DNA from: Selaginella moellendorffii
Taxonomy: Eukaryota; Plantae; Lycopodiophyta
Assembly: GCF_000143415.4 (NCBI RefSeq)
Contig: NW_003314292.1
Coordinates: 868,444 to 932,443, forward strand
Length of the DNA: 64,000 nucleotides
Direction of reading: 5' to 3'
Shown: piece after piece, positions 14,312-62,712 of the stretch
Position numbering within the stretch: position 1 is the stretch's first letter
Layout: the number at the start of each line of letters is the position of its first letter
Translations under genes and position numbers: made by a program
Notes under the pieces: generated by a model
Told to the model about the DNA's origin: nothing
The model's input: the letters and a program-made list of their open reading frames with translations, nothing else
Database searches by the model: none

Positions 14312-14893
14312 ATGGCAACTTCAGTCGTGTTTTGCTTCGTTCTCTGCACCTTTCTGGTTCAAGTCAGTGTGGGTTTGCTTGTACAATATGGCTCCACCAC
14401 AGTCGGGAATGGCAACTTCGTCTCATTGAGCAGCACCAGTTCAGCCCCTACAGTTGACATTGAAGGATTTGGGAAGAATGGCACTACTCGTCTCTTCTCT
14501 GTGGTCATGGCAGATCAAAAGGCATTGGTAGCGTCAAATAAAGTTTATCCCTACATCAACTTTTGGATTGCAAACATTCCAGCCGGCAGCACTGGTAAGT
14601 AATATATATTTTGGTTTACAAAACTTTACAAATCATGGTGGCTTGGTACAGGAGCTGTGAAGGACAGCATTTTGGAGCCTTATGTATCTCCTTCCAACAC
14701 CAGCAAGAACATTCCATACCCAAATCCATTCAATGCAAGGAACCACACGTATGATTTCGTGCTTGTACCACAGAGGAATCCCTTGGTGAAGCCCATGGAT
14801 AGTCGACTTGTCAACTCACTGGCTGATATCATCCAGCAATACCACTGCGGAAGCCCTCTCCAAACGGTCTCCTTTACGACATCACTCCATTGA
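14312..14893 (+). CDS. Secreted divergent PEBP-family (FT/TFL1/MFT-fold) protein, copy A, 174 aa; exons 14312-14594, 14652-14893
   Basis: Collinear with the FT/TFL1 pattern: LLVQYG..VGNG, APTVDI, FSVVMAD, FWIANIPA, PYVSP, HTYDFVL, YHCGSPLQTVSF; signal peptide; 57-nt intron; TATAAAT at 14256. Confidence 0.8.
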
Positions 14894-16872: not shown

Positions 16873-17454
16873 ATGGCAACTTCAGTGGTGTTTTGCTTCG
16901 TTCTCTGCTCCTTTCTGATTCAAGTTAGTGTGGGTTTGCTTGTACAATATGGCTCCACCACAGTCGGGAATGGCAACTTCGTCTCATTGAGCAGCACTGA
17001 TTCTGCCCCTACAGTTGACATTGAAGGCTTTGGGAAGAATGGCACTACTCGTCTCTTCTCGGTGGTCATGGCAGATCAAAAGGCATTGGTAGCGTCAAAT
17101 AAAGTTTATCCCTACATCAACTTTTGGATTGCAAACATTCCAGCCGGCAGCACTGGTAAGTAATATATATTTTGGTCTACAAATCTTTACAAATCATGGT
17201 GGCTTGGTACAGGAGCTGTGAAGGGCAGCATTTTGGAGCCTTATGTATCTCCTTCCAACACCAGCAAGAACATTCCATACCCAAATCCATTCAATGCAAG
17301 GAACCACACGTATGATTTCGTGCTTGTACCACAGAGGAATCCCTTGGTGAAGCCCATGGATAGTCGACTTGTCAACTCACTGGCTGACATCATTCAGCAG
17401 TACCACTGTGGAAGCCCTCTCCAAACCGTCTCCTTTACGACATCACTCTATTGA
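16873..17454 (+). CDS. Secreted divergent PEBP-family protein, copy B; exons 16873-17155, 17213-17454
   Basis: Near-identical to copy A, frame intact. Confidence 0.8.
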
Positions 17455-20597: not shown

Positions 20598-21179
20598 ATG
20601 GCAGCTTCAGTGGTGTTTTGCTTCGTTCTCTGCTCCTTTCTGATTCATGTTAGTGTGGGTTTGCTTGTACAATATGGCTCCACCACAGTCGGGAATGGCA
20701 ACTTCGTCTCATTGAGCAGCACCAGTTCAGCCCCTACAGTTGACATTGAAGGATTTGGGAAGAATGGCACTACTCGTCTCTTCTCTGTGGTCATGGCAGA
20801 TCAAAAGGCATTGGTAGCGTCAAATAAAGTTTATCCCTACATCAACTTTTGGATTGCAAACATTCCAGCCGGCAGCACTGGTAAGTAATATATATTTTGG
20901 TTTACAAAACTTTACAAATCATGGTGGCTTGGTACAGGAGCTGTGAAGGACAGCATTTTGGAGCCTTATGTATCTCCTTCCAACACCAGCAAGAACATTC
21001 CATACCCAAATCCATTCAATGCAAGGAACCACACGTATGATTTCGTGCTTGTACCACAGAGGAATCCCTTGGTGAAGCCCATGGATAGTCGACTTGTCAA
21101 CTCACTGGCTGATATCATCCAGCAATACCACTGCGGAAGCCCTCTCCAAACGGTCTCCTTTACGACATCACTCCATTGA
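20598..21179 (+). CDS. Secreted divergent PEBP-family protein, copy C; exons 20598-20880, 20938-21179
   Basis: Near-identical to copy A, frame intact. Confidence 0.8.
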
Positions 21180-25339: not shown

Positions 25340-25921
25340 TCAATAGAGTGAGGTTGTGAAGGAGACGGTTTGAAGAGGGCTTCCACAATGGTATTGCTGA
25401 ATGATATCAGCCAGTGAGTTGACAAGTCGACTATCCATGGGCTTCACCAAGGGATTCCTCTGTGGTACAAGCACGAAATCATACGTGTGGTTCCTTGCAT
25501 TGAATGGATTTGGGTATGGAATGTTCTTGCTGGTGTTGGAAGGAGATACATAAGGCTCCAAAATGCTGCCCTTCACAGCTCCTGTACCAAGCCACCATGA
25601 TTTGTAAAGTTTTGTAAACCAAAATATATATTACTTACCAGTGCTGCCGGCTGGAATGTTTGCAACCCAAAAGTTGATGTAGGGGTAAACTTTATTTGAC
25701 GCTACCAATGCCTTTTGATCTGCCATGACCACCGAGAAGAGACGAGTAGTGCCATTCTTCCCAAATCCTTCAATGTCAACTGTAGGGGCAGAATCGGTGC
25801 TGCTCAATGAGACGAAGTTGCCATTCCCGACTGTGGTGGAACCATATTGTACAAGCAAACCCACACTAACTTGAACCAGAAAGAAGCAGAGAACGAAGCA
25901 AAACACCACTGAAATTGCCAT
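25340..25921 (-). CDS. Secreted divergent PEBP-family protein, copy D; exons 25921-25639, 25581-25340
   Basis: Intact frame, near-identical to copies A-C. Confidence 0.8.
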
Positions 25922-32044: not shown

Positions 32045-32626
32045 TCAATGGAGTGAGGTCGTGAACGAGACGGTTTGGAGAGGGCTTCCACAGTGGTATT
32101 GCTGGATAATATCAGCCAGTGAGTTGACAAGTCGACTATCCATGGGCTTCACCAAGGGATTCCTCTGTGGTACAAGCACGAAATCATACGTGTGGTTCCT
32201 TGCATTGAATGGATTTGGGTATGGAATGTTCTTGCTGGTGTTGGAAGGAGATACATAAGGCTCCAAAATGCTGCCCTTCACAGCTCCTGTACCAAGCCAC
32301 CATGATTTGTAAAGTTTTGTAAACCAAAATATATATTACTTACCAGTGCTGCCGGCTGGAATGTTTGCAACCCAAAAGTTGATGTAGGGGTAAACTTTAT
32401 TTGACGCTACCAATGCCTTTTGATCTGCCATGACCACCGAGAAGAGACGAGTAGTGCCATTCTTCCCAAATCCTTCAATGTCAACTGTAGGGGCAGAATC
32501 GGTGCTGCTCAATGAGACGAAGTTGCCATTCCCGACTGTGGTGGAACCATATTGTACAAGCAAACCCACACTAACTTGAACCAGAAAGAAGCAGAGAACG
32601 AAGCAAAACACCACTGAAATTGCCAT
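32045..32626 (-). CDS. Secreted divergent PEBP-family protein, copy E; exons 32626-32344, 32286-32045
   Basis: Intact frame, near-identical to copy D. Confidence 0.8.
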
Positions 32627-33295: not shown

Positions 33296-35804
33296 TAGAG
33301 GCAACTCCACAGGTAGCAGCAAGGAAGCCTAGTTCTTAGCTAACAAGTAAAGACATGTGAGCTGGTTTGACAGAACGAGCTACATTGTGATCAAAGTAAT
33401 GGACTTGAAGATTTTAAAAATACAAGCGAAATATTTTACTAGAACCAGTAAGAAACAAGAACCTTGTCACTCTCTCTTAGCTTGTTGCAACTTGCCTAGT
33501 CGAAAAACCGTACATTGCCTGCCCAAACCCAGCTTTGCCTATAGTCTTTTGCCTATTATAGCAAACATGGCCGAAGTGCGAAGGAAAATTGACGATCGAA
33601 GTTTCTTTCCCCGTGACCATAGCTCATCAGATAGATAGATATTCACGCGCTTTAAAGAGATGCCACAACGGAGCCTTAGTCAGACACGGTTTCTAAATCA
33701 AGGGATGATCACGATTAAAGGTTTATCGAAACTTCTCCGGTCAAATGAAATCCACGTAACAAGAAACTGCGGACCGCCACCTTTCTTTTTTCTTTTCTAT
33801 CCACTTGCCTGAGGCTGTCTCCAAAAGTACACACATTTGTTGCCAAGTTCTCCTTCCTTATAGTTCCATCATGGAGCAAGAAAGGTATACATACGTTCTT
33901 GAGATCACATATGTATACGTCTATACGCCTTGACGAGAAAATAGCTGATCCATATTTGGACCCTTGAACTGTTGGATCGATTTTTGGAGCACGAAACACA
34001 GTATAGCAAATGTAATGTGGGATCCTCGAGGCCTTTGCTCATATTTGAGGTGCCGAAATCAGACATTGATGGTGTTTAAGCACTATCTCATTTTTGCCAT
34101 CAAGCATTCCAATGGCGAGCTCAAAATGGTTGGGTGCTGTGGAGGTACACAGAAGAAGATATGGTCTCTTTGGTGATAAACAATCCCTAGTGAGAAAGTA
34201 TTTGCATATAAATACATACACACCTGCAAAGATGCAAAACAAAATCAATATCAATCGTGGTGCTTGAGGATTTTATGGCTTTGACAAAGTCGTACCTAGG
34301 GTGAGTTCTATATCCACCAAGTCAATCAAGGAACGGGAAGATGTCAGCAAATCTTTCAATATTTGGGGGATTTTGGGACATGGATAGTTCCAGGAGTAGA
34401 GATTCCACAATCGGCTCTTGGCCGTGTTCACTGTGCAGCCAGATCCTAAGAATTCAGCGCATCCACCTCGAAAAGGAGGAGGTGATCGTACGCAGTCCTG
34501 TACACCCTAAACAAAATAAGATTAAACAACGTGTTGGCGAACTCTTAGCTCGCTGTGCGGCTGCGATGACCAATCTTGGCGAGATCCAGAGCTCCGTTTC
34601 GAGTGTGCTCGCAATCTCTTTGAAAGTCCAACCGTCCAAGTTTGCCATCGGTGAATCGTCTGGCTCGAGGATCAAAGTTCCAAAGGAGCTGGACGATGAA
34701 AGCCCGGAAGAATCCTTGGGATCTAACAACGCGTGCTAGGAAGCAGATCGTGATTCAGCAAAAGGAAGCGCTCATCTCGTCCCTGTAGTTCTTTGAATTT
34801 TCTGGAACAAGTTCTAGAGTTTGTTCTTTGATTTTTGGCAAGCTCAGCAGCTCGAGGCTCCGGAGAGCCCGCTCGACTTTGAGCAGCTCAGCGCGAAGTA
34901 CACGTAGCTCCAGCAGGATCACCACTCCGTGTGCCACCAGCGAGACGTGCTGCTCCAGCAATTCCCGGATCTTCAAGATCAAGGTGAAAGGTCACAGAAG
35001 GGGTAGAGTTCCAATTCATGTCGGTTGTAACCCAATTGATGGAGAGAGCTCGTCTTGTAGTGTATCACCACAAACTTATCCGTAGACTGGAATGTGGAGG
35101 GCGTTCCGAGGCGTTCGTACAACGTATTTGTACATACATTTAGGTTAGGCTACAGTCCCCTCTACGCCAAAGCTGCAAAAAATGCTGCCATGCCGCCACT
35201 CGGGAGATTCGAACCCCCGACCCAAAGGTCCTAGTTGATGGCCTGTATGGCAAACTAATTACTTCTAGAATAATGAGCCCATTTCTCACATCATAGCAAC
35301 GATTCTTATACTACGTTGGAAACTGCAACAGACCCCCTCCTCGGCATGATGTTTCAAGAGCATCCTGAACGTGAAGTGAATGTTATGCTTTATGCTGACA
35401 AGGGCCCAATGTCCTTGTTCTTCCTAGACAAAGCTTGTAAAGCATACATCGAAGGCATTACACATGTAATCTTCGACAAGGGACGTTTATGGAATGCACT
35501 CCTGGCGTGGATGTGATCAACAAAGCAGCACCATGGGGATAAACTCCGCGAAATAAAGATGGCCTAAATGGAAGTCTACTTAACGACTGCAAGTCCCCGA
35601 TCTTCAAGACCAGTTCAGAGCTTCCCACTCGTAGATTGCGCGATTACAACTCATAGAATGAACTCCTGGCGTGGATGTGATCAAGAGGATCATCACAAGC
35701 AGCACCATGAGGATAAACTTTGCGAAAAAAAGATGAAGTTCTAGAATCAATAAGTACTTCCAATTCATTGAGTCATGCCTCTTATATCAATAAAAGCAAT
35801 AACA

Positions 35805-36226
35805 TCAATAGAGTGAGGTCGTGAACGAGACGGTTTGGAGAGGGCTTCCACAGTGGTACTGCTGGATGATATCAGCCAGTGAGTTGACAAGTCGACTATC
35901 CATGGGCTTCACCAAGGGATTCCTCTGTGGTACAAGCACGAAATCATACGTGTGGTTCCTTGCATTGAATGGATTTGGGTATGGAATGTTCTTGCTGGTG
36001 TTGGAAGGAGATACATAAGGCTCCAAAATGCTGCCCTTTACAGCTCCTGTACCAAGCCACCATTATCACATTTGTAAACCAAAACATATAAGTTGAAGTT
36101 ACCTGTGCTGCCCGCTGGGATGTTTGCAATCCAAAAGTTGATGTAAGGGTAAACCTTGTTTTGTGCTGACAATGCCTTTTGATCAGCCATAACCACCGAG
36201 AACAAACTAACAGTGCCATTCTCACC
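35805..36226 (-). pseudogene. 5'-truncated PEBP copy F
   Basis: Exon 2 complete (36046-35805); exon 1 present only from GENGTVSLFSVVMADQKALSAQNKV; no signal peptide or ATG. Confidence 0.75.
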
Positions 36227-36229
36227 ACA

Positions 36230-37585
36230 CGCTTAAGAAGAGAATATCTCATGTGTGCCTTTGTAGAAAACACCTGGTATCTCTTGAGAAAAGCTTGACG
36301 TTCTATAGCAGCACTTACATCCAACGGGGAGTGTCCGATCATCCTCTCAACCAGCTGCATAATCGGCGACCATTCTTGATTAAACAGAATTGCTCGTGGT
36401 TCACTAGAGCTTCCATTAAAAGGCTTTCATCTTCGAGCTGGTATGCATCCTTGCTCAGAAAACAATTTCTTTTCTTTTCTTTTATTACCTTAACTCGGCC
36501 TGATTGAACTACACCGGACTCCAAAAACCGCCTCTGTAGAACTGCCAGACGTAAAGGGAGGGGACTCCAGGCTGTCTGCGGCTGAAAAATGGACGTGAAG
36601 ATCATAAAACTTACTGCGAAGTTTTCTTCTACTCCTGGTTTCCTGATTGGATTGGAGGAAAAGCATACGAATACGCGAAGTTCCCAGGCCGACAGGTCCG
36701 ATGCTGTTCTGAAGTGAAGATAACAAGAATTATGCATGGAGAGAAAACTTGAAAGGCCTTCTTTGTGTTTACTTGGTGTTTGTTCACTGTAGGAATCCGA
36801 ACCGCGAGAAAAATCTTCTATAGAAACAGGTGCTTGCCTTGAGCCAGAAAATCAAAATAAGCAAACGCAGTCACTGCGCAAAGTTAGACCTGTATATGGA
36901 TGATCACGAACAGTCGAAGAAGGTTGCTGCTCATTCCAGGATTGGCTGCAGCGCCATTGTTTTCTTGGAGTTCGGGGCCAGGCAGCTTGTGTAAGCTGCT
37001 CTTCCAAGTAGTACCACGCGGGTGCCTGCAAATATCCTTAACTAGTACTTGAAGAAGAAAACTTTACCTGTTTCCCCGAGGAGGTTTGTGTACTTTATGT
37101 ACCACGCTCTGTCGAGCCTCTTCAAGGTCCTCCAAGAACAGTAACAATTTCCGGGACGAGAAGAAACATCCCCCGACATTCCTTTCGCATTGGAAGAAAA
37201 GAAAATTCAAGGCAAAGACTTGTAATACTTTGAGCTGTGGGGTAGGACGATACTCAATGCCAAAAACTCGTTGAGCATCATCGGTCATGGATAGCTTCAA
37301 GCTTCGACTTCCAATTCCTTCCTGGTAGTGATCCTTGAAAATGTCCACCGCTTCATCTACCTGTGTGCTATGCTTCCATCGATGAAAAGCTATAGAAACC
37401 TTCCACTTACTTGTAGAACATAAGTGCATCGCCTGGACCTCTGGAGCGTCGGAGGAGCTGCGCGAAGCATTTCTCGGCGCGAGAGTCTACCGGTAACTGA
37501 GACGCTCCGATCTGCTCGCACAGGCAAGAAGAGAGCCACTGCGCCTTAGGCGAGAACCGTAAAACCCTACTATGGTTCTAAACAT
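36230..37585 (-). pseudogene. Multi-exon gene or pseudogene of unknown function, 3' end abutting PEBP copy F
   Basis: Exon-like blocks with GT/AG borders (e.g. VDEAVDIFKDHYQEG.., QLVERMIGHSPLDVSAAIERQAFLKRYQ); I could not assemble one consistent frame. Confidence 0.3.
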
Positions 37586-37648
37586 CCCGCCATTTTGCGA
37601 GCTTGAAAGGTTCCAGGAATATGCTTGCCAAGCAGGGTCTAGGGTTTT

Positions 37649-39221
37649 ATGGCGCTTTGCCGCTTCTCTCGCGCACTCTCTTCTCTTCCAGATCGCGCAT
37701 TGCGGCAATTCGCTCCTGCGGCGCCGAGGAGATCGTTCCCCAAGACGCGCCACGGCGTGACATGGGACGATCCCTACCACTGGCTGCGAAATTCCGAGGA
37801 TCCGGCCGCCATCGCGTATCTCCAGGCTGAGAATCAGCACGCGCAGTCGACCATGGCTGGGACAAGGGAGCTCCAGTGCCAGATCCGCCAGGAAATGGCG
37901 AGCAGGATGGAGAAGGAGCTCGCATCGCCTCCAGAGCGCTGGGGGGATTGGTGAGTTCTTCCTTGCTCGTTTTGATTTTTTTTTGCCTAGCTGAGGAACT
38001 TAGAAACAATGTAGGTACTATTTCGTGCATATCCCGCAAGGGAAACAGTTTCCCATCTACTCGAGACGAAGAGCCCGCCAAGGTGGAAGGCTGAAGGCTT
38101 TCTTTACAAGTTTTTTTGACAAGAACAGTGAAGTTATGATCGACATCAATGAGCTTGCTGCCGAGCACGGTAAAGTTTTGAGGATCTTTCCTTGTTTCTC
38201 TCTTCTTCCTAATTACACAAGTGTAGGCCATGCGCAGCTTGGAGTTTTTAAGCTATCCAGAGACCACAAACTGTTAGCATACACGATCGACTTGGGTGGC
38301 AACGAGATGTTCACATTGTTTATCAAAGACTTGGAAACTGATAGCCTCCTCCTGGAGCACAAAACCGATGGTGTAGTAAGTGTGCAGTGGTCTGATACTG
38401 GAGAATATCTTTACTACACTTGTAGTGATGTGGCACAGCGACCTCACAGGTTTCTAGTTGAAGTTTCTTCTAGAATCATTTTTTCTCGATCTCGACAGGG
38501 TTTTGTTGTGGAACTTGCGATCTAAAGATGATGACATTGCAATTTATCACGACGACAATCCAAAGAACTTTGTTGATGTTACAAGAACCAAAAACTGGCA
38601 GTACGTTTTGATTAATGTCAACTCAAAGACGTCCTCTGAGGTAATTGCGTTTCACAAATGTGTTGCTCGAGCCTCTACAGGACAGATTTTTCTGGTAGAT
38701 CCGAAAACTTCAGCCACAACATTGCGGAAAGTTGCAGATAGAGTTGATGGCATCCAGTATTTCGTGGAACACCATGAAGAGCACCTGTATATTCTTACCA
38801 ATTTTTTGGGCGACAAGAAGCTAGCGTCGCTAGGAAACAACTATCGGCTTGTCCGCTGCAAGACAGATAGCTTGACCTCGAAGGCGTGGGAGGTAAGTCA
38901 ATTCTCGTTTTTTTCACAGCAAATACTGAAACACTTTAAGAGGTTGTCCCAGTCGAGAGCGAAAATTGGATAGAGGATATGGATATTTTTGCGAAGCATT
39001 TGATCTTATACAGACGACAAAATGGTCTTCCCATTGTGCATGTTTTCAACCTGGATGTAAGCATATGGTGAAAGTTTTGGTCTCACTAATCTCTTTCCTT
39101 TCAGAGCCTGAAAACTCCTCCTTGGACTGTAAACCTTCCCTCCGGGATAACAGTTCTTACTCCTGGAGCAAACTGTGACTTCAATTCGTCTACTCTACGG
39201 CTGTCGATATCTTCACTGGTG
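37649..39221 (+). CDS. Oligopeptidase B / prolyl-oligopeptidase S9A N-terminal (beta-propeller) portion with organellar transit peptide; catalytic domain absent
   Basis: HGVTWDDPYHWLR, YLQAEN, PPERWGDWYY, LSRDHKLLAYTID, NVNSKTSSEIFL, IEDMDIF, DFNSSTLRLSISSLV; no GxSxGG domain follows. Confidence 0.85.
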
Positions 39222-39266
39222 GTAAGCTCTCTTTCTTTCTTGCATTAGATGTTCGGCAATATAAAG

Positions 39267-40710
39267 ATTGGGCATGTAACGAAATCTGGAGAAATAGCGG
39301 GGCCACGTACATTGGAGCACATGGTTGATGTTTGTCTTCACTCGGAGGTAAGAGGTTTTTATCTTTGTTCGTTTGAGGTTGCCATATATTTCTTGTCTCT
39401 AGGGAGACCGTCTTTTGTCTCAACGGCTTCTAAGATCACTAAAAAATCGCTTCGCTTCTACGAAAGAGGTGACTGTCTTCCAGCACTTGCTTTTAAATTG
39501 AATCTCGCTGTTTTATCTTTAGTACAGGTCGGCGTGTTTGAGATGGTCGACAACGGTTTACGAGCGGTAGAAAATCCCAGTTTGAAGTTTCTTTCTGATA
39601 GAACTGGGGAGGACACTAATGCATCAGCCACCGTTGGGGTGGCTTTGGAAGGATCTCGGCCGCTGCTGGTTGAAATCCAGGTAAGCGACTTCTAGGATTT
39701 ACGTTGGATGATGATACTTTTAGCCAAATCTGAGCGTTGTCTGGCTGCTCTAGCTTTCCAGGTTCAACGAGAGACCGGTGGTAGATTCTTTGGAATTTCC
39801 CGAGTTTCGAGTGAGCTGGACTGCCAAGAACCTCTGACTTGCCATGATCTGACTTTAAAACCGAGAAGCGTATCTGACAACGATCAAAAGCTAAAGTTTT
39901 CTCCGGCATGAACGCGCGTTTTGCAGGTCTTATGCTCTCCTGCCACTTCACTGCCAAGTAAAAGAACGTTCACTGGAGTGGATCCATCTCGATTCAATCT
40001 GATTGTTGCCGTAAGTCACTCCATAAATATTCTCCACTTTTGTGAGGCTTGACGCTGTGATGCCAGGTCTTACTCAAACAAGCGCGCTTGAGACTTGCAA
40101 GACAGGTGCGTTCTATACTTTGTGATAGCAAAAGTTCTTATGCTGAAATACTGCTCTAGGATATTTTTGTTAATGTCGTTGGAGGCTTTCGTTTGGAAGA
40201 GCCCGCCACAGATATTGCTGTTGCCGTCGCTATTGCCAGCAGGTACTTTCTCTCGACTAGCTGGGCATACCAACTCACGAGCTTCGTCTTGCTTGCAGCT
40301 ATATAGAAAGGCCGGTTCCTCGGGACACAGTCTTCGTTGGTGAGCTAGGACTCGGGGGAGAGCTGCGCTTTGTAAGTTCTTACGTGGTTTCTCACTTTTC
40401 AATGCTGGAAGTTCCGTCCATGCAGGTAGCTCAACTCGAAAGGCGACTGTTTGAGGCATCCAAGCTGGGTTTCAAGAAATGCATCGTCCCACAGGGTGCT
40501 AAAGGAGTCAAGGTGGACGGAATGGAGCTTATTCTTTGCTCGAGCCTCAAGGACGTTCTAGAGAAAGTCTTCAACTACAAGAGCCTGCCCCAGCAGCGAA
40601 AGAGTGGAGCCACGGTTCATTTGGATGCGTTTCCGGAAGAAGACGGGGTGTGTGGTGAGGTCCAAGTCGGTCAGGACGCTCTTGACGATGATCTTGCTAA
40701 TGATAAGTAA
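39267..40710 (+). CDS. radA: C-terminal half of DNA repair protein RadA/Sms (KNRFG region plus Lon-like domain); N-terminal Zn finger and Walker A absent
   Basis: IGHVTKSGEIAGPRTLEHMVDV, KNRFASTKEVGVFEM, LEGSRPLLVEIQ, DIFVNVVGG..EPATDIAVAVAIAS, GELGLGGELR, EASKLGFKKCIVP; exons in frame. Confidence 0.9.
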
Positions 40711-41087
40711 TAAGCTTTTGCATCGTAAAATTTTAATGTCACAGGTGTACATATAATCTAGGAGCTTATACGAATTGTAAATAACCATATCGTTCCAAGG
40801 ATATAGATCTAGCAATACGATTGGTGGTCTTGATTGTTCTCTTAGCCTCAACAGGCATCACCCAGAAGAAGGGGCTGTGATTGTCTCCTACCTTGGACAG
40901 TGCTTGGAGCAATCGCGTGTGCCTTCCTCGTCGTGCAGTGGCTGCTTGGAACCAGTGGCACGTAGAGATTGAGCCACAAGAAGAAGAGTGAATCTTTCCG
41001 AGATGACCAAAGATGACTCTAAAGCAATAAAATGCTTGTTATTAATAATGTAAAATGAATTAACCTAGAAATTAATGAAAACATGAT

Positions 41088-41864
41088 TTAATTAAGATTA
41101 TTATTCCTCCAGATTATCTTCTTAAAAACTTTTTCATAAAATGTTACTATTAATTGTCCAGTATCTTCTATTTTTAAAATTGCAAATACTATGCAGTTTG
41201 AGTAAAATATATGATTTTTCCATATAATGTTATTGTTATTAACTATTATAAGTAAATGACCATCTAGTTGAAGATGAAGATAACAAAATATATTTGATCT
41301 TTCTGATATTGTAGACCATATACTTTTGATTGTTTCAATATCATCAATAACAAAATTACAATTTTCTAATTTAGCTCGAAATTTATTATTAGAAGAAATT
41401 AAACTATGACTATTTATTATAAATGTGCCATAAAAATTTAGAGGACTGTTAAGTAGTTGTGTTCAATATGGCCAACATTGTAAAAAAAAACATCAATTCT
41501 ACTATATAAAATATTAAGAGATAGATTAGGATAACCTATATCAGAATATGGCTCATGAGGATCTCTCACAGAATTTATTCCAAGTGCAATAAAATAAAAA
41601 TATAAATTATCTATATACGGTTTCAATCATTTCTAGACCATGTAATCTTGCATGATATCCTACTAATCTTAGCATTTCTAAAAAAGTTCTTCTAACACAG
41701 AAAACTGATAATTATCAGGAAGTGAAAAATTTCTAAAACCTAAAGGAGTTGTTGAAAATATGTTGATTACCAAAAAGACCAAACAGTCCAATCCATCTAG
41801 TTTGAGGTGGTTGTGCATTCGATAAATTAACAATTATAAATAATAACAAGAAACTAAATATCAT
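41088..41864 (-). pseudogene. Frameshifted AT-rich paralog of the secreted bulb-lectin gene at 3440-4312
   Basis: Signal peptide MIFSFLLLFIIVNLSNA, then stops and frameshifts; open C-terminal block LENCNFVI..IWST..CYLHLQLDGHLLI..IIWK..LKIEDTGQLIV..IIWR. Confidence 0.7.
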
Positions 41865-43188
41865 TTCAGATTTAATAAGAAGTTTTTAGAAATTTACTAT
41901 ACTAGGTAGATGAAGAAAGGTGTTTAAATGTATGTAAAGAAATTCTAGACTATGTATAAAATGATTTTTCTTAATTAAAAAATAATAACTACCTAAACTT
42001 TATTATATAATATTTAATCTATAAATCATTAAAGGCATAATTATATTTAGTTTTAAAAATTATAATAAATAATTAATTTTTTAGTATCTTAATTATATTA
42101 AATGAAATCATTAATATATTTTAATTGATAAATAAAATTTAAATTTAAAACTAGTACAAGTATTTAATTAATAAATTAATAATTATCTTCTGTGAGGTTC
42201 AGATATACAGCTATGATGCTAAATGCTATTATTAGCATAGTAGGATTCAGATTAGATTAAATAATTTAATAATTTTAGGCTTTTATATTTCATTCACTCA
42301 TTGATCCTTAAGGAGTGATTAGATTTATGTTTTCTAATTTAAATCTAACTTGTCCATCACCTAGATCTCTTTTTTTTGTAATTTTTCCATTTTGTCTCTT
42401 TTGTTTTTCTTCTTTTCATTCATTTTCATGGTAGAGTAATTTACTCCTTCTTTATAGCAGCATAATTCTATATAATATAAGAATCCTTAAACCCCAAAGT
42501 GGAGCTGAATGTGATTCATGTGGTAGTGGCCAAGGTAGAAGTCTGACGAGTGTAACACATTTGCATCAACTCGGAAAGTCAAAAACATAAGTGGAACTTT
42601 TAAAGAAGTGCTTAAGGAATAAACACGAAATCATTAGTAAGTGAGTTTCAAATAAAAGACAAAAAAATTACCAACATGTGGCAAGTGTTGTGATGTGTGA
42701 AAGACCAAGCTTGAGATAGAGTCCAAAACTGAGACCAAAATTGAGTCCAAAACTAAATTTAAAACCAAGCTCGAGTTTGAGGTGAAAGCCCAAATGATTG
42801 TTTCTCAAACCCTAAAGGGTCCTTATATAATCACCTTATATAACCTTATATAATCAAGGACAATCAAAAGTGCCCCCTTCCACCAATCTGAGTGCATAAA
42901 ATATAAAAAAGGAATATAGAAAATGTGAATATCAATTAGCTCAAAATTCTTAATTTATATATAGGTGCAAATGGTCCAGATTGAAACTAATCCCATAATT
43001 ACCAAAATCTAATTATGCTAATATTAGTATAGAACATCGTAACTGTACATTTGGATGTGGTAAAATCCTTTCCTTTCAATTTGCATTCTCCTAATCTGTG
43101 GGCTCTAGAGCTATGTTTCCAGTATGATAAAGTTTTTGCCAAATGGCCATACAGGATTGTGTTGAGATCTCTTGAGGTGGACCAAACA

Positions 43189-43214
43189 CTCTCACTCTCT
43201 CTCTCTCTCTCTCT
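43189..43214. repeat. (CT)n microsatellite
   Basis: Direct reading of the CT run. Confidence 0.8.
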
Positions 43215-43668
43215 TAAATAGGGAGATAAAATTTAAAAAAATATATTTGTGAGGTTGTGGTCAAGTATAAAAATTTTCTTTAAGGATAGCTTTCGAGATT
43301 ATTTCGTTTCCGCAAAGGGCACGCGATTTAAATTTTCAAACTAGTTCCAGTAGAACATGTTTGTATTTCTCATCCATGAAGCCGCCGCTGAGAACAAGGG
43401 CAAGGGTAGTAGAGACAGTTCCATCATGAATTTCTGGAAGGTCCTCACTTCTGATCTGCAACCCCTTCCAGATCATGCAATCTGGAGCATTCCAGTTTTT
43501 CCTGCATTGGTGGAACAAGCAATGAAGACAATATTATTAAATGGGGGATGCGGGGGTGGGGGGCGGGCAGTCAAGGATGCCCAAGAGAAATATCTCCCTC
43601 AGTACTTAACCGGCAGGTGGAGTTTTCTAAGCTGTGAAGGCTGAGATACCATGTCTCATCAACATTAG

Positions 43669-43885
43669 TGACTGGAGTCCACATTCTGATTTGCAGGCTC
43701 GTGCTCATGGGGTCAGACGAGCAAAGTAGGTATTAAAACTTGTTCCAGATGCTGTTACTCAAGTTTTTTCATTTGTCCAGGTGATGATCTATATAGGCTC
43801 CGCTAATTAGTGCTAGCGGAACTATTGAGGAGAGGATGATGCAGTTAACAAGAAGAACATGGTGGTTGAGCATCTCGTGGTATTC
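43669..43885 (+). pseudogene. Degenerate fragment of a CHD3/PICKLE-type SNF2 helicase C-terminal domain
   Basis: DWSPHSDLQA-RAH, intron, VMIY..GTIEERMMQLT..NMVVEHLVV, with frameshifts. Confidence 0.7.
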
Positions 43886-45082
43886 GCTCAAAATGCTTGG
43901 AAATGAGGGCTCATGTCTAAGTCAAGTTTCCCACAAAAGACCTCAGCATATCTTCCATGCACTTTGGGGTGTGAATGCCTGAGCTGTATAATCTAACAGT
44001 TGAAGCTTTGGCTTTGCAGTGATATGGATGTCAAGAACCGGACCTGGTAGTGGGGTAAGATGATATGATCTAGGGCTTGATGTCGTGGAGGCGTGACAAA
44101 TCACGGTTTGATCAGGGTTTTTTGGTCTACAAAGAAGATCAGATCAAATTGGTGCTTCAACAGGTGCGTGAGAACAAACAATTTGACTAGTTCATCACTG
44201 CTTTTGACCTGTTTTCTCCTGTGCACATCCTTGGCCTATCAGCACACTGAGCAAGAATTGATTGAGCAGTACTGGTGGGGATGACAATATAGGCAAAGTC
44301 TGGTAAGAACATTATGAATCTCTTGCATCAAACACTGTCACCTCTCAGCATCATTGCTACCAAACTCCATGGACCAGAACCTCCTCCAGATCAACAACGA
44401 CAACAAGCAACCCAGCAAGAGATGATAAAGTTTTTTTCTCTGTTTTTTATTTTATTTTTCATTTTTAGAATAAAATAAAGATGCTTAGTACATAAAACTT
44501 GAAAAATTATATCGATACAATGTTAGCGCAGAGGCCCTCCAAGGGTAATAAGGTCCAAGAGTGACCAGAGGTTTAAATTCAGTATTGACATGATATAACA
44601 CAAATTTGTTTTAAAACAACAAATACAAGAATTAAAATTTAAGACCACCTTAGCCATGAAATTGTCGCTCTGTCAGATGATGGCATTCCAAGATACACAT
44701 TTCTCACATGCATCTTCTGAAACTGTTCTATATGGAGTCTAAAACGCCCCTCAAAGTACCTATTCAGTGATTAGATCGATAATACTGTTGTCCAGGCATT
44801 GCAGTTGCATCATTGCCTGCTGCAAGTGCCCATTCCAGGCAAGCGCTACGAGCATGCCATTCCCTGAAACAACAGTCAGCTGCTGAATTCTGGCAAAGCA
44901 CTGCCACGCATGTTGAATGCTGCCATTCTGTCCATACATCTTTGTTGGATTGTGGAACTATGGACACTAGAGAAATGTATATTCTACATTCAATTCATAA
45001 GAAGCATGCCATACTTCATAGAATATAACAAACCAGCTCCTCTTTATTTACGTATATGAATCCATGTCAGAGGAGCATAAGC

Positions 45083-45811
45083 TTACATGATTCCATAGCT
45101 AGACATTGGGTTGAAGCCCACAGGCACAACAGCAGCACTGAAGATCTGAACCTCCTTGAGTTCACCATGAAAGTAGCGTTTGTTGTCACGGGGGTCATAA
45201 CCAATGAAGACAGGTAGGCTGGAATTGAGGTTGACTATCTTGGAGCCGTTCTGTGACTTATCAAGTTTAGAATCAACGTAGATAGACCCAACAGTGCCAT
45301 TTCGGACTGCAGCAACATGGTGCCAAGTTCCATCAGTGACTGGCACTGTTCCCTTAATGTTGAACTGGTACTCACGATTGTACACCGTAAACCATAGATT
45401 GCCATTGAGGATCCATAGCCACCACTCACCATAGATATCAGAGCGTTGCTGGATGACGCACAGTTGCTGCTTGATGTGGGGTGGGACCTTCACCCAAGCA
45501 TGAACAGCAAAATCAGTCTGCCCAGAGAGAGAGGGCGTGGTGCCCATGGAAATGTATGTTGCACCATCAAACACAATACCATCAGTTGTGTGAGCAAGTT
45601 GGGACCCGGCCTGCTTCACAAGCCCAGTTGCCTTGTTCCCAGACGAGTCTGCGACCAGGAAGCCTATCTTCTCATCCAGCTTCCACCATGCAAACAGTGA
45701 CTTAGAGATGCCCACAGCCTCATCTGATGTCGAAGAAATGGAATTCGAAGCATCCACCACAGTGGCCAGAAGAACAGCAAGAGCAAAGTAGAAAGAGAGA
45801 CGGGAAGCCAT
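45083..45811 (-). CDS. Secreted LamG-like / Concanavalin-A-like jellyroll protein, 242 aa, intronless
   Basis: Signal peptide MASRLSFYFALAVLLATVVDA; AWWKLDE..ADSSGN, FDG..YI, FAVHAWVK, DGTWHHVAAVRNG, IYVD, FIG..YFHGELKEVQIFS; TATA ~35 bp upstream. Confidence 0.85.
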   Translation of the reverse strand: MASRLSFYFALAVLLATVVDASNSISSTSDEAVGISKSLFAWWKLDEKIGFLVADSSGNKATGLVKQAGSQLAHTTDGIVFDGATYISMGTTPSLSGQTDFAVHAWVKVPPHIKQQLCVIQQRSDIYGEWWLWILNGNLWFTVYNREYQFNIKGTVPVTDGTWHHVAAVRNGTVGSIYVDSKLDKSQNGSKIVNLNSSLPVFIGYDPRDNKRYFHGELKEVQIFSAAVVPVGFNPMSSYGIM

Positions 45812-46619
45812 TGTGTTATGATTTTCACTTGCTGCTGCATTCTTATATATCCTTCTTGTGGCCACGTACTTACGGAGAACTTCAGAATGCCTTAATGCAT
45901 TAATTAACAAGGAAAACCTGAAAATTTAGAACAAACAACAGTTCATACATAGACCCTTGTGGAGTGCGTGGGAAGGTATAACAACCTATGGTCCATAATA
46001 TTGAATGTCTCAAGACTTTAGGAATTGCCTCAATTAACACGAGACATGAATATCTGGCCAGACCTCTAGAAATATTCCACGTGGCAGCTGTGCCTTATCC
46101 ATGCCACCTAGGTCAATGCCTATGTGGCAGGCAGGTTGGCTCTGAGCTGCAGGAGATGCATGTTTTGCATTGTGGCTAGTAGGTCAGACTCAGTGTTCCT
46201 CCTTATCCTTCATCTAGAAGTCTACTATGGGATTCCTGCATGGGGGATGTTGCAGCCTGACTGTACAATGATAGCATGAGGTGGTGTGGTCACAAACTAT
46301 TATCACATATGTCTTTTGTAGCAACTTGTTCCCAAGTCCATTGTCATCATCAAAACAGATATAGACAGAGGTCTATAGCTTGATTGATCCATTTGATCAA
46401 CTTGACACCACTTACTACTACCATGGGATATGTTACAATTTCACGAGTATAGAGTTTTGTTAGTGCTTCACTATATAAACTCTTTTATAGTCATGATCCA
46501 ATATTACTAATAGAGTTGAGTTTACCTTTATGATTGCTATGAGTTGCAGATGTTAAGTCATGGGATTAATATTTGATGAGCATTCTTCCACTTGTTAAGG
46601 TAGAATTTACCAAACACCT

Positions 46620-58767: not shown

Positions 58768-61700
58768 AACTTGTCGACTTGACAATAATAAGCACAAGTC
58801 TTTCAAGCATTTGCAAAGTCCTTCTGTCAAGAATTGTCGTGATCACTGTGGACACAAGGATCGGAATAAACACCATAAGTTAAAGTTTGTGGTGACTACT
58901 TCAGATGCAAAGGGGTCAAAGAAGTAGAAGTTCTTTGTGAAGAATTATAAACAAAGTTGTTATCATTGTGGCCAGCTTGGACACTACAAGGCTGATTGTC
59001 CATAGTTGAAGAACAAGCAGCATGGCAAGAAGAATGGCCAATCTTTTATTGATGGTAAATCCGATGCTAAAAAGTTACAAACTTTGCAACGTGAGGACGA
59101 TGAGGACAACCATTCTGGTCGAAAGAAAAGGCTTTCGATCATTGCTCGCCAACTCAACTGTGTGTGGAACAAAATGAAGCTCAAGGATACTCATGAATCA
59201 ACTTTAATGCTAGAGGGTGTATTTCATAGTGGTCCAATGCAGATTTTACTGGATAGTGGGAGTGATGACAACTTTGTTTCAGCAAAGTTTGTTGTGAAGC
59301 ATGGCCTGGTCACATGAGGAGTTCTTCCATACATGGTGGAAGGTGCAACTACTTTTACTCAACATTTCGATGCTTGTGTAGAGGGGCTAGAAGTGTTGGT
59401 TGGCAACACCACACTTGTGGAGACTTTTTATATTGTGGATATCCATTATGTGGATTTCATTCTTGGGATGCCATGGTTAGTGAAGGTGGATCCGAAGATA
59501 AAGTGGAGTATTAAGCATGTTTCGCTGGAGTATGGCAGCGTTAAAGATGTGTGGTTTGGAGAAGGAGTTCAACCTCTAGCTGTTATGCTCTCTGCTACAT
59601 CTTTGAAGCAAGCTTGTTATAATAGAAAAGTACTTTCAAATTACTTGCTGTTTGTTTGTGATTTAGGGGACCAAGGCACATGTGGGGGAGAAGCAATAGT
59701 ACGGGATGTATCAATGAGTTTTCTGATGTTTTTCCATCTAAACTTCCTCATGGGTTACCTCTATTACAAGGTGTAAAGCATGGGATTACATTAGAGCCGG
59801 GGACATGGCTAATTTACCGACATCCATTTCAGTTAAATTATGCAGAGGAGCAAGAAGTTCAACGACAAGTCAAAGAGTTACTTGAGTTTGGATTTATTCA
59901 ACCAAGTAAGTTTCTATTTGGTGTTTCAGCCTTGCTTGTGAAGAAGGACGATTCAATGCAAATGTGTATTGACTGCCATGCCTCGAACAAGAAGACAGTG
60001 AAGGATAAGATGCTAATGCCATATGTGGATAATATTTTAGACAAGCTTGGTAAAACACGAGTGTTTACCAAGATTGATCTGAGGAGTGAATATCATTAGA
60101 TTGCAATAGATGATGCATCTATCTCCAAGATAGCATTCAACACAAGCTTTAGGCATTTTGAGTTTACAATTATGCCATTTGGTTTGATGAATGCATTAGC
60201 CATTTTTACTCGGTTGATAACAAAGGTATTTGGGTGTTATCTTCATGAGTTTGTAGAGATTTTCTTGGACAATATTCTTGTTTTCAATAAAAATATGGAG
60301 GACCATAAGATGCATTTGCGTAACATTCTTTTGTTACTCCGTGACAACAAACTTTATGTGATGAAGAGCAAATATGAGTTTGTAAAGTCGGAGGTGGAAT
60401 ATTTAAGCAATATTATGATATTTACGGGTGTCAAGACGGATCCAAGGAAGGTGGCTGTGGTGGAGAATTAGCCTACACCAACTACAATGGCCAAGTTATG
60501 CAGTTTCCTTGGAATGGCTAGTTACTATCAATGTTTCCAACATAAGTTTGTGGAGGTGGCTATTCCTTTGACACAGTTGTTGCACAAGAACGTGCCATTC
60601 GAGTGGAAGAAGCCACAAAAGGAGAGTTTTGTGGTGCTAAAACGATTGTTGAAAGAGGCTCTAGTGTTTCGCATTGCTAATCCATCAAAACCTTACGAAG
60701 TAACATGTGATGCGAGTGGTTATGTATTGGGAGGAATTCTCATGAAAGAAGGACAGCCTATTGCATATGAGAGTCGAACTTTGAATCTTGTAGAACAATG
60801 CTATTCCATATATGAGCAAGAGTTAGTCTCTATTGTTCATGCTTTGCAGACGTAGCGGCACTATCCTTATGATGCAATGTTTGTGATGTTGACGGATCAC
60901 AAACCACTTGTGTATCTTTTCACACATGAGGAGTTGAACACTAGGCAAGCTCGTTGGATAGTTAAACTCATGGAGTTTAGAAAGTTTCTTATTGAGCATC
61001 GTCTAGGAAAATTGAATGTGGTGGTGGATGCTTTATCTTGTATTCATCATGTGACAGCATTACAAACATAATTTTGTTATCATTTGAATAAGGTGGTCAA
61101 TGAGTTTGGGTTGTTGATTGAGCGTGCTCAGGCTCAAGATGCTAAGGTGGCCTCTTTGCGTGACCAAATGGAAGCCCCTTTCTCATTGGTGGATGGGATT
61201 CTCTATTATAATGGTTGTGTATATTTGTCATGGGTGGATGTGTTAATTACTTAAGTTTTATTCCACTATCATAATTGTCCGGAGGCTAATCATTTTAAGG
61301 GGAAGAAGACGTATGAGTTGATTAAGTGCAATTTTTATTGGAGGAATATGAAAGCTGATATCCTCAAATATTGTAAATCATGCGAGCTCTGTTAGCAAGT
61401 TAAGGTGCCACAGGAGAAGCTAGAGGGACTTTTGCAACCTTTACTTATTCCTCAGAGCCGTTGATGTAGTATCTCTATAGACTTCATCACTTGTTTGCCA
61501 TGAACACAGAGGCAAAAGGAGCAAGTATGGGTCATAGTGGATCGATTGACGAAGTATGTGCAGTTGTTGGCTCTTTGGAAAACTATCATTGCCCTAGACT
61601 TGGCTATAGTCTACTTAGAGAAGATTTTTTTTTTTTTGATTTTGGTTTGCCAAAAGACATCATTAGTGATCAAAATTCAAAGTTCACAAGTGGATTTTAA

Positions 61701-62340
61701 AGGAGCTTTGCGAAGGGTATACAAGTGACTTTGAAACTCTCGAGTGGAGATCATCCTCAGATAGATGGGCAAACCGAGCATGTGAATCAAGTGGTAGAGG
61801 ATATGCTACGTTGTAGCGTTAGTCAAAGGCAAGGACAATGGGATTTATATCTTTTGTTAGTGCAATTTGCTTACAATAATAGCCCACACAGTGGAACCAA
61901 GCTAAGTCCTTACTTTGTTATGTTTGGAAGACATCCCCAAACAACAGTGGAGTTGGGATTGCATTTGAGTAAGGATGTTCAAGATAAACTTGATTCTGAA
62001 GCAACTGATCTAGCCATAGAAGTTGATAAGATTCTAGTGGTATGCAAATAGAATTTGTAGGTAGCTCAAGATAGAGTGGAGAAGTTTGCTAATGAGAATC
62101 GATAAATTTGGGAATATAAAGTGGGTGATCTTGTCTTTGTGCGAGTGATCTTTCTGTCAAATGAGTGGTAGAACACCTTGGTGCTTTTGCAGAGAGGGAA
62201 GAGTGATAAACTTTTTCATTGATATGCTGGTTCATATAAAGTGCTAGAGCACATTGGTAAAGCAGCTTATCGGGTGCGGCTACCAGCTAGGGTTAAAATT
62301 CATTTAGTATTTTATGTCAACCAATTGAAAGGTGTATTAT
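58768..62340 (+). pseudogene. Disrupted gag-pol remainder of the gypsy element: Zn knuckle, protease, RT, RNase H, integrase
   Basis: CYHCGQLGHYKADC; LLDSGSDDNFVS; FTKIDLRSEYH, MPFGLMNA, FLDNILV; VTCDASGY, TDHKPL; HPQIDGQTEHVNQ; many stops and frameshifts. Confidence 0.9.
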
Positions 62341-62479
62341 TTCGGAGTGACGGGCCCAATGTCTCCTTGATGTGTATGGCTATGGAAGTTGGATCAAGAG
62401 TTTGAGTAGGGTTCCTTAGAAAGGGTAATCACCAATACAACTCGTCTTTGGGATAAGGACTTTGTTGGGGGGGAAGAAT

Positions 62480-62712
62480 TGTTAGGCACCAACTTTGACC
62501 ATGTGGTCAACATCGGTCAAAGGGAGGTTCAAGGGTATATTAAGACATGTTAGGGTAAAGGACTTAACCTACCCTAGGGCTCACAGTGGAGTGGCAGTAT
62601 AGTGGAGCTTTTGAGGTAGCTTGGGGGTGGTTGGGTGGTGAAGAACCTCAAGAGGTGGTGTAGTATAGTCTAGGGTGACTAAATTTTTGTCTTTTTACGC
62701 CAAATCATAACA
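62480..62712 (+). repeat. 3' LTR of the gypsy element
   Basis: Homologous to 50600-50833; followed by TSD CGTGA. Confidence 0.9.

Follow-up and report, generated by a model that had tools for sequence, protein, structure and literature searches.

A chimeric gene that forms at a duplication junction, is amplified and then decays is a well-known phenomenon. In Drosophila, Sdic is reportedly a chimeric gene that was made at a duplication junction and subsequently amplified; chimeras produced by tandem duplication are also said to be known from Drosophila, and new chimeric genes have reportedly been surveyed in rice. Here, a locus of this kind was analysed in the lycophyte Selaginella moellendorffii, within a stretch of 64,000 nt (RefSeq assembly GCF_000143415.4, contig NW_003314292.1, positions 868,444 to 932,443 of the forward strand), which as a whole is called the window below and is numbered from its first letter. 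At 37649-40710 of its plus strand, the 5' exons of a gene for an oligopeptidase B-like protein of the S9A peptidases (OpdB) are followed, in frame, by the 3' exons of a gene for RadA/Sms (RADA in plants). The chimera is probably one copy of a young chimeric duplicate, i.e. a decaying by-product and not a working coding gene, and a young chimeric pseudogene is the most likely identity of the locus in the window. Its copies appear to decay in the manner of pseudogenes, the window copy being the least mutated of them.

The locus resembles the amplified duplication-junction chimeras in several respects: parts of two neighbouring genes are fused as DNA with their introns kept, the promoter and 5' exons of one parent drive the 3' exons of the other, the parents are retained and the chimera is multiplied. 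Between the two parents lies a defined DNA junction, and both are still present, in four intact loci. Unlike in those systems, four of the five copies carry disabling lesions and the fifth has no native acceptor at one of its introns, which gives the family the look of a failed or decaying chimera and not that of an established new gene. To duplicated (non-processed) pseudogenes the copies are similar in being young, in having kept their introns, and in their frameshifts, nonsense codon, splice losses and insertions and deletions (indels), whose density in exons equals or exceeds that in introns; they differ in that a conceptual frame remains open in the window copy and in that the locus is chimeric and not the copy of one gene. 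The hallmarks of a retrogene were not observed, as all 13 parental introns are kept at the parental positions and the 14th is the chimeric junction intron.

A full-text search of the literature found no description of these chimeric loci. In public databases they are represented by several automatic models of a 'hypothetical protein' with Peptidase_S9_N and ChlI/Lon_C, and it is of value for annotation that such entries are modelling artefacts of these loci. The locus also provides a base-resolved case in which two phase-0 introns, joined by duplication, yielded an in-frame chimeric gene, with five copies at differing stages of decay that can be compared side by side and together with both intact parents. 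It may serve as a teaching case of gene birth and death in a lycophyte, while its importance would be greater only if expression of the window copy and an interaction with RADA could be demonstrated.

Architecture of the chimeric gene

Rebuilding the gene base by base gave 15 exons (E1-E15) with GT...AG at every boundary and a summed length of 2124 nt, i.e. 707 codons and the stop codon TAA (40708-40710). All introns measure 45-64 nt, with the single exception of one of 246 nt. The main parts of the gene are as follows.

37649 to 39221, plus strand: OpdB-derived E1-E7, coding for the S9A beta-propeller as far as SISSLV and for an extension N-terminal to it (exon-wise Pfam, PDB sequence search, tblastn, parental RefSeq splice pattern)
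37649-37950, 38015-38169, 38227-38449, 38499-38640, 38686-38892, 38943-39056, 39105-39221, plus strand: E1 to E7
39222 to 39266, plus strand: chimeric 45-nt intron with the recombination breakpoint at 39254/39255/39256 (megablast and base-level alignment)
39267 to 40710, plus strand: RadA-derived E8-E15, coding for a fragment of the RecA-like core from IGHVTK, KNRFA and a complete Lon-like P domain (NCBIfam, PDB search, tblastn, RefSeq)
39267-39347, 39403-39468, 39528-39680, 39927-40010, 40067-40105, 40160-40242, 40299-40371, 40426-40710, plus strand: E8 to E15
39442 to 39456, plus strand: KNRFA motif, in which the Gly of KNRFG is replaced by Ala (GGT>GCT, G>C at 39455)

Domain searches were performed exon by exon. 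E1-E6 were collinear on positions 7-355 (of 414) of the Pfam family Peptidase_S9_N (PF02897), with E-values from 6e-13 to 4e-3, while E8, E9, E10, E13, E14 and E15 were collinear on positions 218-453 (of 454) of the NCBIfam model TIGR00416 (RadA), with a best E-value of 8e-12; single RadA exons, which are too short, gave no match in Pfam. The sequence search of the PDB returned residues 260-308 of Streptococcus pneumoniae RadA (5LKM) and trypanosomatid oligopeptidase B (2XE4 and 4BP8). When the intact parental proteins were compared with the whole 64-kb window by tblastn, only residues 1-431 of OpdB and 327-611 of RadA were matched. The match to OpdB is extended to residue 431 by E7, and the last propeller strands (MPEATYDVDL...) are absent. 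Nowhere in the window was there a match to OpdB residues 432-735 (the catalytic domain, with GESAGG at residue 585) or, with intact RadA as the query, to the RadA zinc finger (CxxC pair, parental residues 81-98), and Walker A (GDPGVGKS, parental residue 207) is likewise absent from it.

With respect to its first half, the window product is thus close to oligopeptidase B and other S9A proteins (2XE4, 4BP8): E1-E7 are approx. 97% identical to residues 1-431 of the intact OpdB-like protein, a stretch made up of its N-terminal segment and propeller, there is no difference from the parent at the N-terminus, and the intact OpdB RefSeq models have the same splice pattern as E1-E7. Unlike these enzymes, the product is devoid of the whole alpha/beta-hydrolase domain, including the GESAGG serine, and, as the entire catalytic domain is absent, it cannot be a peptidase. 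Its second half is similar to RadA/Sms (plant RADA; S. pneumoniae 5LKM, 5LKQ and 8RXC), E8-E15 sharing 98% identity with the last 286 residues of the plant's own RADA. It differs from RadA in having no zinc finger, Walker A or Walker B, in reading KNRFA for KNRFG and in the remnant of the RecA core, which is predicted to be unfolded. Judged by these features of its sequence, the predicted product cannot be an ATP-driven branch-migration helicase. KNRFA is found in all five chimeric copies, and KNRFG in both intact RadA genes.

These results agree with the original prediction, made from the letters of the window, which had recognized a propeller joined to the C-terminal half of RadA with a Lon-like domain, had read KNRFA in place of KNRFG, and had noted the absence of a peptidase catalytic domain, a RadA zinc finger and Walker A. 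It had also placed the end of the S9A exon at phase 0 at 39221, followed by a 45-nt intron and a phase-0 RadA exon from 39267, with no stop within the exons. The rebuilt exons have exactly this structure: E7 ends in phase 0 at 39221 (SISSLV/gtaagc), the intron spans 39222-39266 (45 nt) and E8 starts in phase 0 at 39267 (ag/IGHVTK), and the frame is open over 707 codons when a GAG acceptor, described below, is used at intron 5.

Parents, copies and the junction

A HMMER search with the last exon led to SELMODRAFT_416656, likewise a fusion of propeller and RadA, with 95% identity to the query. A search that started from this protein, together with cluster listings, revealed parents and further copies on scaffolds of the assembly GCA_000143415.2. 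In the following, the OpdB parental loci are labelled L002 and L007, the RadA parental loci L003 and L008, and the chimeric loci L001, L004, L005 and L006.

GL377586.1: intact OpdB-like gene SELMODRAFT_98843 / LOC9641417 (735/717 aa)
GL377596.1: intact OpdB-like gene SELMODRAFT_105460 / LOC9649178
GL377596.1: intact RadA gene LOC9649546 (612 aa)
GL377586.1: intact RadA gene LOC9641407
GL377596.1, ~955 kb: chimeric locus L004
GL377596.1, ~1156-1158 kb: chimeric locus L005
GL377596.1, ~1177-1180 kb: chimeric locus L006
GL377596.1, ~1222-1225 kb: chimeric locus L001

The search for parents that the original prediction had proposed was therefore positive, with intact OpdB and RadA on both GL377586.1 and GL377596.1. 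The intact OpdB-like proteins comprise 717-736 aa and include Peptidase_S9, and both intact RadA proteins possess the zinc finger, Walker A and KNRFG. Two RefSeq proteins, XP_024537431.1 (LOC9649537 isoform X1) and XP_024537433.1 (LOC112348677), match the exons of the window letter for letter, the former containing E7-E15 exactly, plus 26 residues of E6. As these proteins are recorded on GL377596.1, the window represents the fifth chimeric locus of that scaffold. A model of a C-terminal RadA fragment on GL377586.1 (LOC9641411) points to at least one further copy.

The two parents are neighbours on GL377586.1, where RadA (706 kb, plus strand) lies upstream of OpdB (773 kb, plus strand) in the same orientation and is followed by an RMI1 unit. 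The arrangement on GL377596.1 is different: at ~1,106.7-1,111.0 kb (L003 to L007), the RadA unit (RadA ... RMI1-Pkinase, plus strand) runs straight into an inverted OpdB unit (ABC transporter-491aa-OpdB, minus strand). This opposite orientation of OpdB, compared with the two plus-strand genes of GL377586.1, is either a haplotype inversion or an assembly join.

Megablast showed that homology to the OpdB locus L002 stops at position 39255 of the window and that homology to the RadA locus L003 begins at the same position. Within the 45-nt intron, 39222-39254 represent the beginning of OpdB intron 7, G39255 occurs in either parent (1 nt of microhomology; approx. 34 nt are OpdB-derived in all) and 39256-39266 form the 11-nt 3' end of the RadA intron located before the IGHVTK exon. 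Since both parental introns are in phase 0, the frame was kept automatically. The alignment revealed a junction that is base-identical in the window, L001, L004 and L005, and the limits of the two homologies are the same in L006; at 39258, four copies have A and L005 has G. Private substitutions and indels are found in each of the five loci, at distances of tens to hundreds of bases from the join. An identical junction in five loci, accompanied by private changes close to it, indicates a single origin followed by copying. It also rules out the misassembly against which the original prediction had cautioned, since the junction of the window recurs in four further loci of GL377596.1, each with private mutations; a false join of unrelated reads or contigs at 39255 has practically no probability left, given that the same junction stands in five separate loci of a public assembly, each with its own substitutions and indels. 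The fusion is a non-homologous intron-to-intron join of two normally separate genes and is genuine genomic sequence.

The sequences that flank the chimera are derived from its parents on both sides.

36222 to 37648, no strand assigned: OpdB upstream flank duplicated with the gene, comprising a fragment of the minus-strand RMI1-like '256-aa' gene and the shared intergenic promoter region (blastn)
40711 to 41227, plus strand: RadA 3' flank carried with the RadA half (blastn, window 40707-41227 against L008 13049-13625)

On the left, the window aligns from 36222 onwards to L002 (from its position 8486), and to L001 and L006 at 99% (blastn). In every comparison the boundary of homology lies exactly at 36222, where a truncated PEBP-like repeat adjoins on the left. 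The left flanks of L001 and L006 are collinear with the OpdB upstream flank (isochorismatase, RMI1, protein kinase and the 256-aa RMI1-like gene) over more than 9 kb. On the right, the downstream flank of RadA resumes in L004 beyond an inserted repeat and reaches position 14515 of L008.

Based on these observations, we infer the following route. The parents, RadA and the OpdB-like S9A gene, would have been neighbours in the same orientation, as on GL377586.1, when a tandem duplication arose with one end in the RadA intron before the IGHVTK exon and the other in OpdB intron 7. The join would have put the OpdB promoter and exons 1-7 ahead of the RadA exons from IGHVTK to the stop codon, leaving both parents intact, and the chimeric segment would then have been copied to at least five places on GL377596.1. 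A tandem duplication predicts an OpdB-5'::RadA-3' gene at the junction together with two intact parents, and this is the pattern seen; such a route is rather likely. The original prediction had suggested an intron-to-intron deletion or recombination. The join of two introns holds, as the breakpoint lies within the 45-nt intron, but the event was a duplication and not a deletion; intact copies of both parents remain on the scaffold of the chimeras as well as on its partner.

A transposon that captured and spread gene fragments (Pack-MULE, Helitron or similar) could also produce joined, multicopy fragments of two genes with their introns kept, and repeats and insertions do surround the copies. 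Against such a capture, in place of segmental duplication, speak the OpdB-side flank, which is collinear with the parent over more than 9 kb through the Pkinase, RMI1 and isochorismatase genes, the RadA side, which runs on into RadA's own flank, and the different end points of the copies. Moreover, no inverted repeats that bracket the block were found in the region searched (35000-45000). Transposon capture is hence highly improbable, and segmental duplication is the origin that we favour.

Decay of the copies and coding potential

The intron-5 acceptor of the window copy is damaged.

38937 to 38942, plus strand: damaged intron-5 acceptor, parental TAG/GAG changed to TAA GAG (G>A at 38939)

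In the parents, L004, L005 and L006, intron 5 ends in ...TTTAG/GAGGTT, whereas the window and L001 have TTTAAGAGGTT. In the alignment, TAG is present in L002, L007, L004, L005 and L006, and TAA is confined to the window and L001. The intact OpdB RefSeq models read AWE/EVVPV across this intron. The substitution G>A at 38939 abolishes the native acceptor, and an AAG arises one base downstream; an exon that starts there (38941) is frameshifted and runs into a stop codon at 38971-38973. In-frame splicing is achieved only with the GAG acceptor at 38941-38942 (exon start 38943), with the loss of one Glu compared with the parent, and a GAG acceptor is unique among the acceptors of the chimera. The original prediction had pointed out a weak GAG near 38942, and the change at 38939 explains it. 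As a rule, splicing prefers the first AG that follows the branch point, and at position -3 of a 3' splice site G is disfavoured more than any other base; the frame-shifted product is therefore expected to dominate at intron 5, which, judging from the sequence around the acceptor, is probably the case. The mRNA of the window locus, if made, would most likely be frame-shifted and end early, after about 353 codons. In RefSeq the locus is split into LOC112348677 (E1-E4, then out of frame, with its end in E5) and LOC9649537 (from a Met in E6). No RefSeq model bridges E5 and E6 at the window locus, which is consistent with a lost acceptor.

An exon-wise comparison revealed that all four other chimeric copies are disabled by frameshifts, a stop codon, lost splice sites and 5' truncations.

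L001: in-frame 54-nt deletion in E1, intron-5 acceptor lost, 1-nt deletion in E7, AT donor after E11, in-frame deletions in E15
L004: ATG lost with the first 197 nt of E1; TGC>TGA in E11
L005: without E1-E2; 1-nt deletions in E4 and E10; TG acceptor before E5; E8 donor deleted; a deletion that takes the E14 acceptor and 14 nt of E14
L006: 55-nt deletion in E1; the same 1-nt frameshift in E7 as in L001

According to a count from the per-site tables, there were approx. 10 indel events in 2.1 kb of exon and approx. 3-4 in 0.9 kb of intron, i.e. the density in exons is at least equal to that in introns.

Substitutions were polarised with both parental copies, as a pairwise ratio of nonsynonymous to synonymous rates (dN/dS) against one parent was uninformative (the counts are small and the copies are mosaic). 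For the RadA half, a comparison of the two intact genes gave no nonsynonymous (N) and seven synonymous (S) differences (N0:S7), plus 22 intron sites, whereas the derived changes of the chimeric copies are N15:S9 (one N being the stop codon; Fisher p=0.0068). This distribution clearly points to a relaxed constraint on the RadA half relative to the intact RadA genes. In the OpdB half the derived changes are N22:S18, the same ratio as in the intact OpdB pair (N8:S7). The per-site list shows that changes shared by four copies cluster there (approx. 13 exonic sites, as against one in the RadA half), and the OpdB half of L005 is nearly identical to the parents. Such a pattern would reflect exchange with functional OpdB copies and not selection on the chimera. 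The window copy itself has no private substitutions across the whole of 37649-40710, and its open frame therefore reflects few mutations and not selection. Taken as a coding sequence, the family gave no sign of selection, with lesions in four of the five copies, the contrast between N15:S9 and N0:S7 in the RadA half and an ambiguous OpdB half.

Several observations weigh against a decaying by-product of one tandem duplication. With the GAG acceptor the frame of the window copy is fully open (707 codons), and all its other splice sites are kept. Isoform X1 of LOC9649537, an annotation model, uses the SLV-IGH splice, and a transcript that spans the junction may thus exist. The N22:S18 of the OpdB half includes fewer N changes than simple neutrality predicts (p about 0.003-0.03), and, as the signal of this half is ambiguous, there may be some residual constraint on it. 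Finally, in several copies the downstream flank of RadA gives way after 0.5-1.5 kb to other sequence (the region of a LamG gene); taken together with the inverted arrangement on GL377596.1 and the differing ends of the copies, this indicates that the history was more complex than one simple tandem duplication.

The fold of a possible product was predicted for XP_024537431.1 (E7-E15 of the window and 26 residues of E6), with an alignment of RadA and OpdB relatives. The P domain (approx. residues 140-310) was modelled with a predicted local distance difference test score (pLDDT) of 84-96, and a Foldseek search superposed it on 5LKQ with a template modelling (TM) score of 0.93 (root-mean-square deviation 1.7 Å) and on 5H45 with a TM score of 0.94, in line with the Lon-like domain that had been read from the letters. 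The pLDDT of the propeller remnant and of the RecA-core fragment (IGHVTK...KNRFA...VGVFEM) was below 50, the latter being predicted as unfolded. In this model, the P domain is the only RadA module that could work alone. The P domain of RADA has been described as a scaffold for the formation of hexamers (Chevigny et al., bioRxiv 10.1101/856716).

Two other readings have to be considered beside that of a decaying pseudogene, and the first concerns the protein. A working chimera of approx. 706 aa, composed of the putative OpdB targeting peptide, almost all of the propeller and the P domain of RadA, might enter the RADA hexamers of organelles and, as a dominant negative, modulate or block branch migration. 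In favour of this are the frame that is open with the GAG acceptor, the match of the predicted P-domain fold to the protease-like domain of RadA, the KNRFG>KNRFA change common to all copies and the RefSeq isoform across the junction. It is quite unlikely, nevertheless, as disabling lesions affect four of the five copies, constraint has been relaxed in the RadA half and the window's open frame, in the absence of private changes, says nothing about selection. In addition, intron 5 no longer has its native acceptor and the first AG that remains shifts the frame, the fragment from IGHVTK to VGVFEM is predicted to be unfolded (pLDDT below 50), and among the 120 best hits listed no protein of another species combined the two domains. 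The new gene and dominant-negative RadA subunit of the original prediction found no support in these data (disabled copies, an unconstrained RadA half, a disfavoured GAG and two fragment models in RefSeq). In its most specific form, the idea is that the least-decayed copy, the one in the window, is expressed with the GAG acceptor and that an organelle-targeted protein of propeller and P domain enters RADA hexamers and damps organellar recombination. If true, it would be a naturally evolved dominant-negative RadA, born at a duplication junction. It is conceivable because the P domain is the hexamer scaffold, and is made very unlikely by the decay of the family.

The other reading disregards the frame and is based on a candidate non-coding RNA in intron 10.

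39701 to 39883, plus strand: candidate box C/D RNA inherited from RadA, within the 246-nt intron 10 (CGTTG/CAACG terminal stem, box C ATGATGA, CTGA boxes; alignment)

The element is found in all five copies, and in the window its two guide regions next to the CTGA boxes are intact. The chimeras might matter solely as additional transcribed box C/D copies under the OpdB promoter, i.e. as a non-coding host gene whose frame is irrelevant. This is suggested by the 246-nt intron with stem, box C, both guides and box D in each of the five copies, and by the GT and AG of intron 10, which are intact in all of them. On the other hand, the element is conserved no better than the other introns: relative to both RadA parents, 5 nt (AGTTT, at 39832 of the window) are deleted inside the element in the window and L006, and in L001 there are three substitutions, one in the stem and one in guide 2. 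Neither the whole window nor intron 10 gave an Rfam match, and L004 and L005 have no promoter-proximal exons. A host gene is unlikely on this evidence, and the candidate, being no better conserved than other introns, is treated as a probable passenger of the decaying chimera.

Repeats and duplicates around the chimera

The surroundings of the chimeric copies contain further repeated sequences. A repeat of ~520 bp occurs six times in the window and also just downstream of the intact OpdB genes.

35811-36221 (minus strand), 14368-14887, 16926-17448, 20651-21173, 25346-25868 and 32051-32573: ~520-bp repeat in the window
L002 12911-13435 and L007 12880-13439: the same repeat downstream of intact OpdB

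It overlaps a family of secreted PEBP proteins, and it is a truncated copy of this repeat that abuts the boundary at 36222.

Upstream of every OpdB or chimera copy, part of RMI1 is duplicated, and this partial copy is annotated as a 256-aa protein.

36222-37600, minus strand: partial RMI1 duplicate in the window
L001 4260-6155 and 8390-9945: corresponding RMI1-related regions of L001

The full RMI1 gene follows a few kb on, and then a diverged fragment of OpdB exons 1-2 (~87% identical). These partial copies of RMI1 and OpdB indicate nested duplications that are older than the chimera.

Two larger segments were also noted.

41513-44376, ~2.9 kb: segment present in the window and L001 and absent in L005, between the RadA flank and a LamG-like gene (45083-45910, minus strand)
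59596-62572, minus strand: ~3-kb repeat, 84% identical to sequence inserted on the 3' side of the chimera in L004 and on its 5' side in L005

The former is probably an insertion, and the latter is probably a transposable element.

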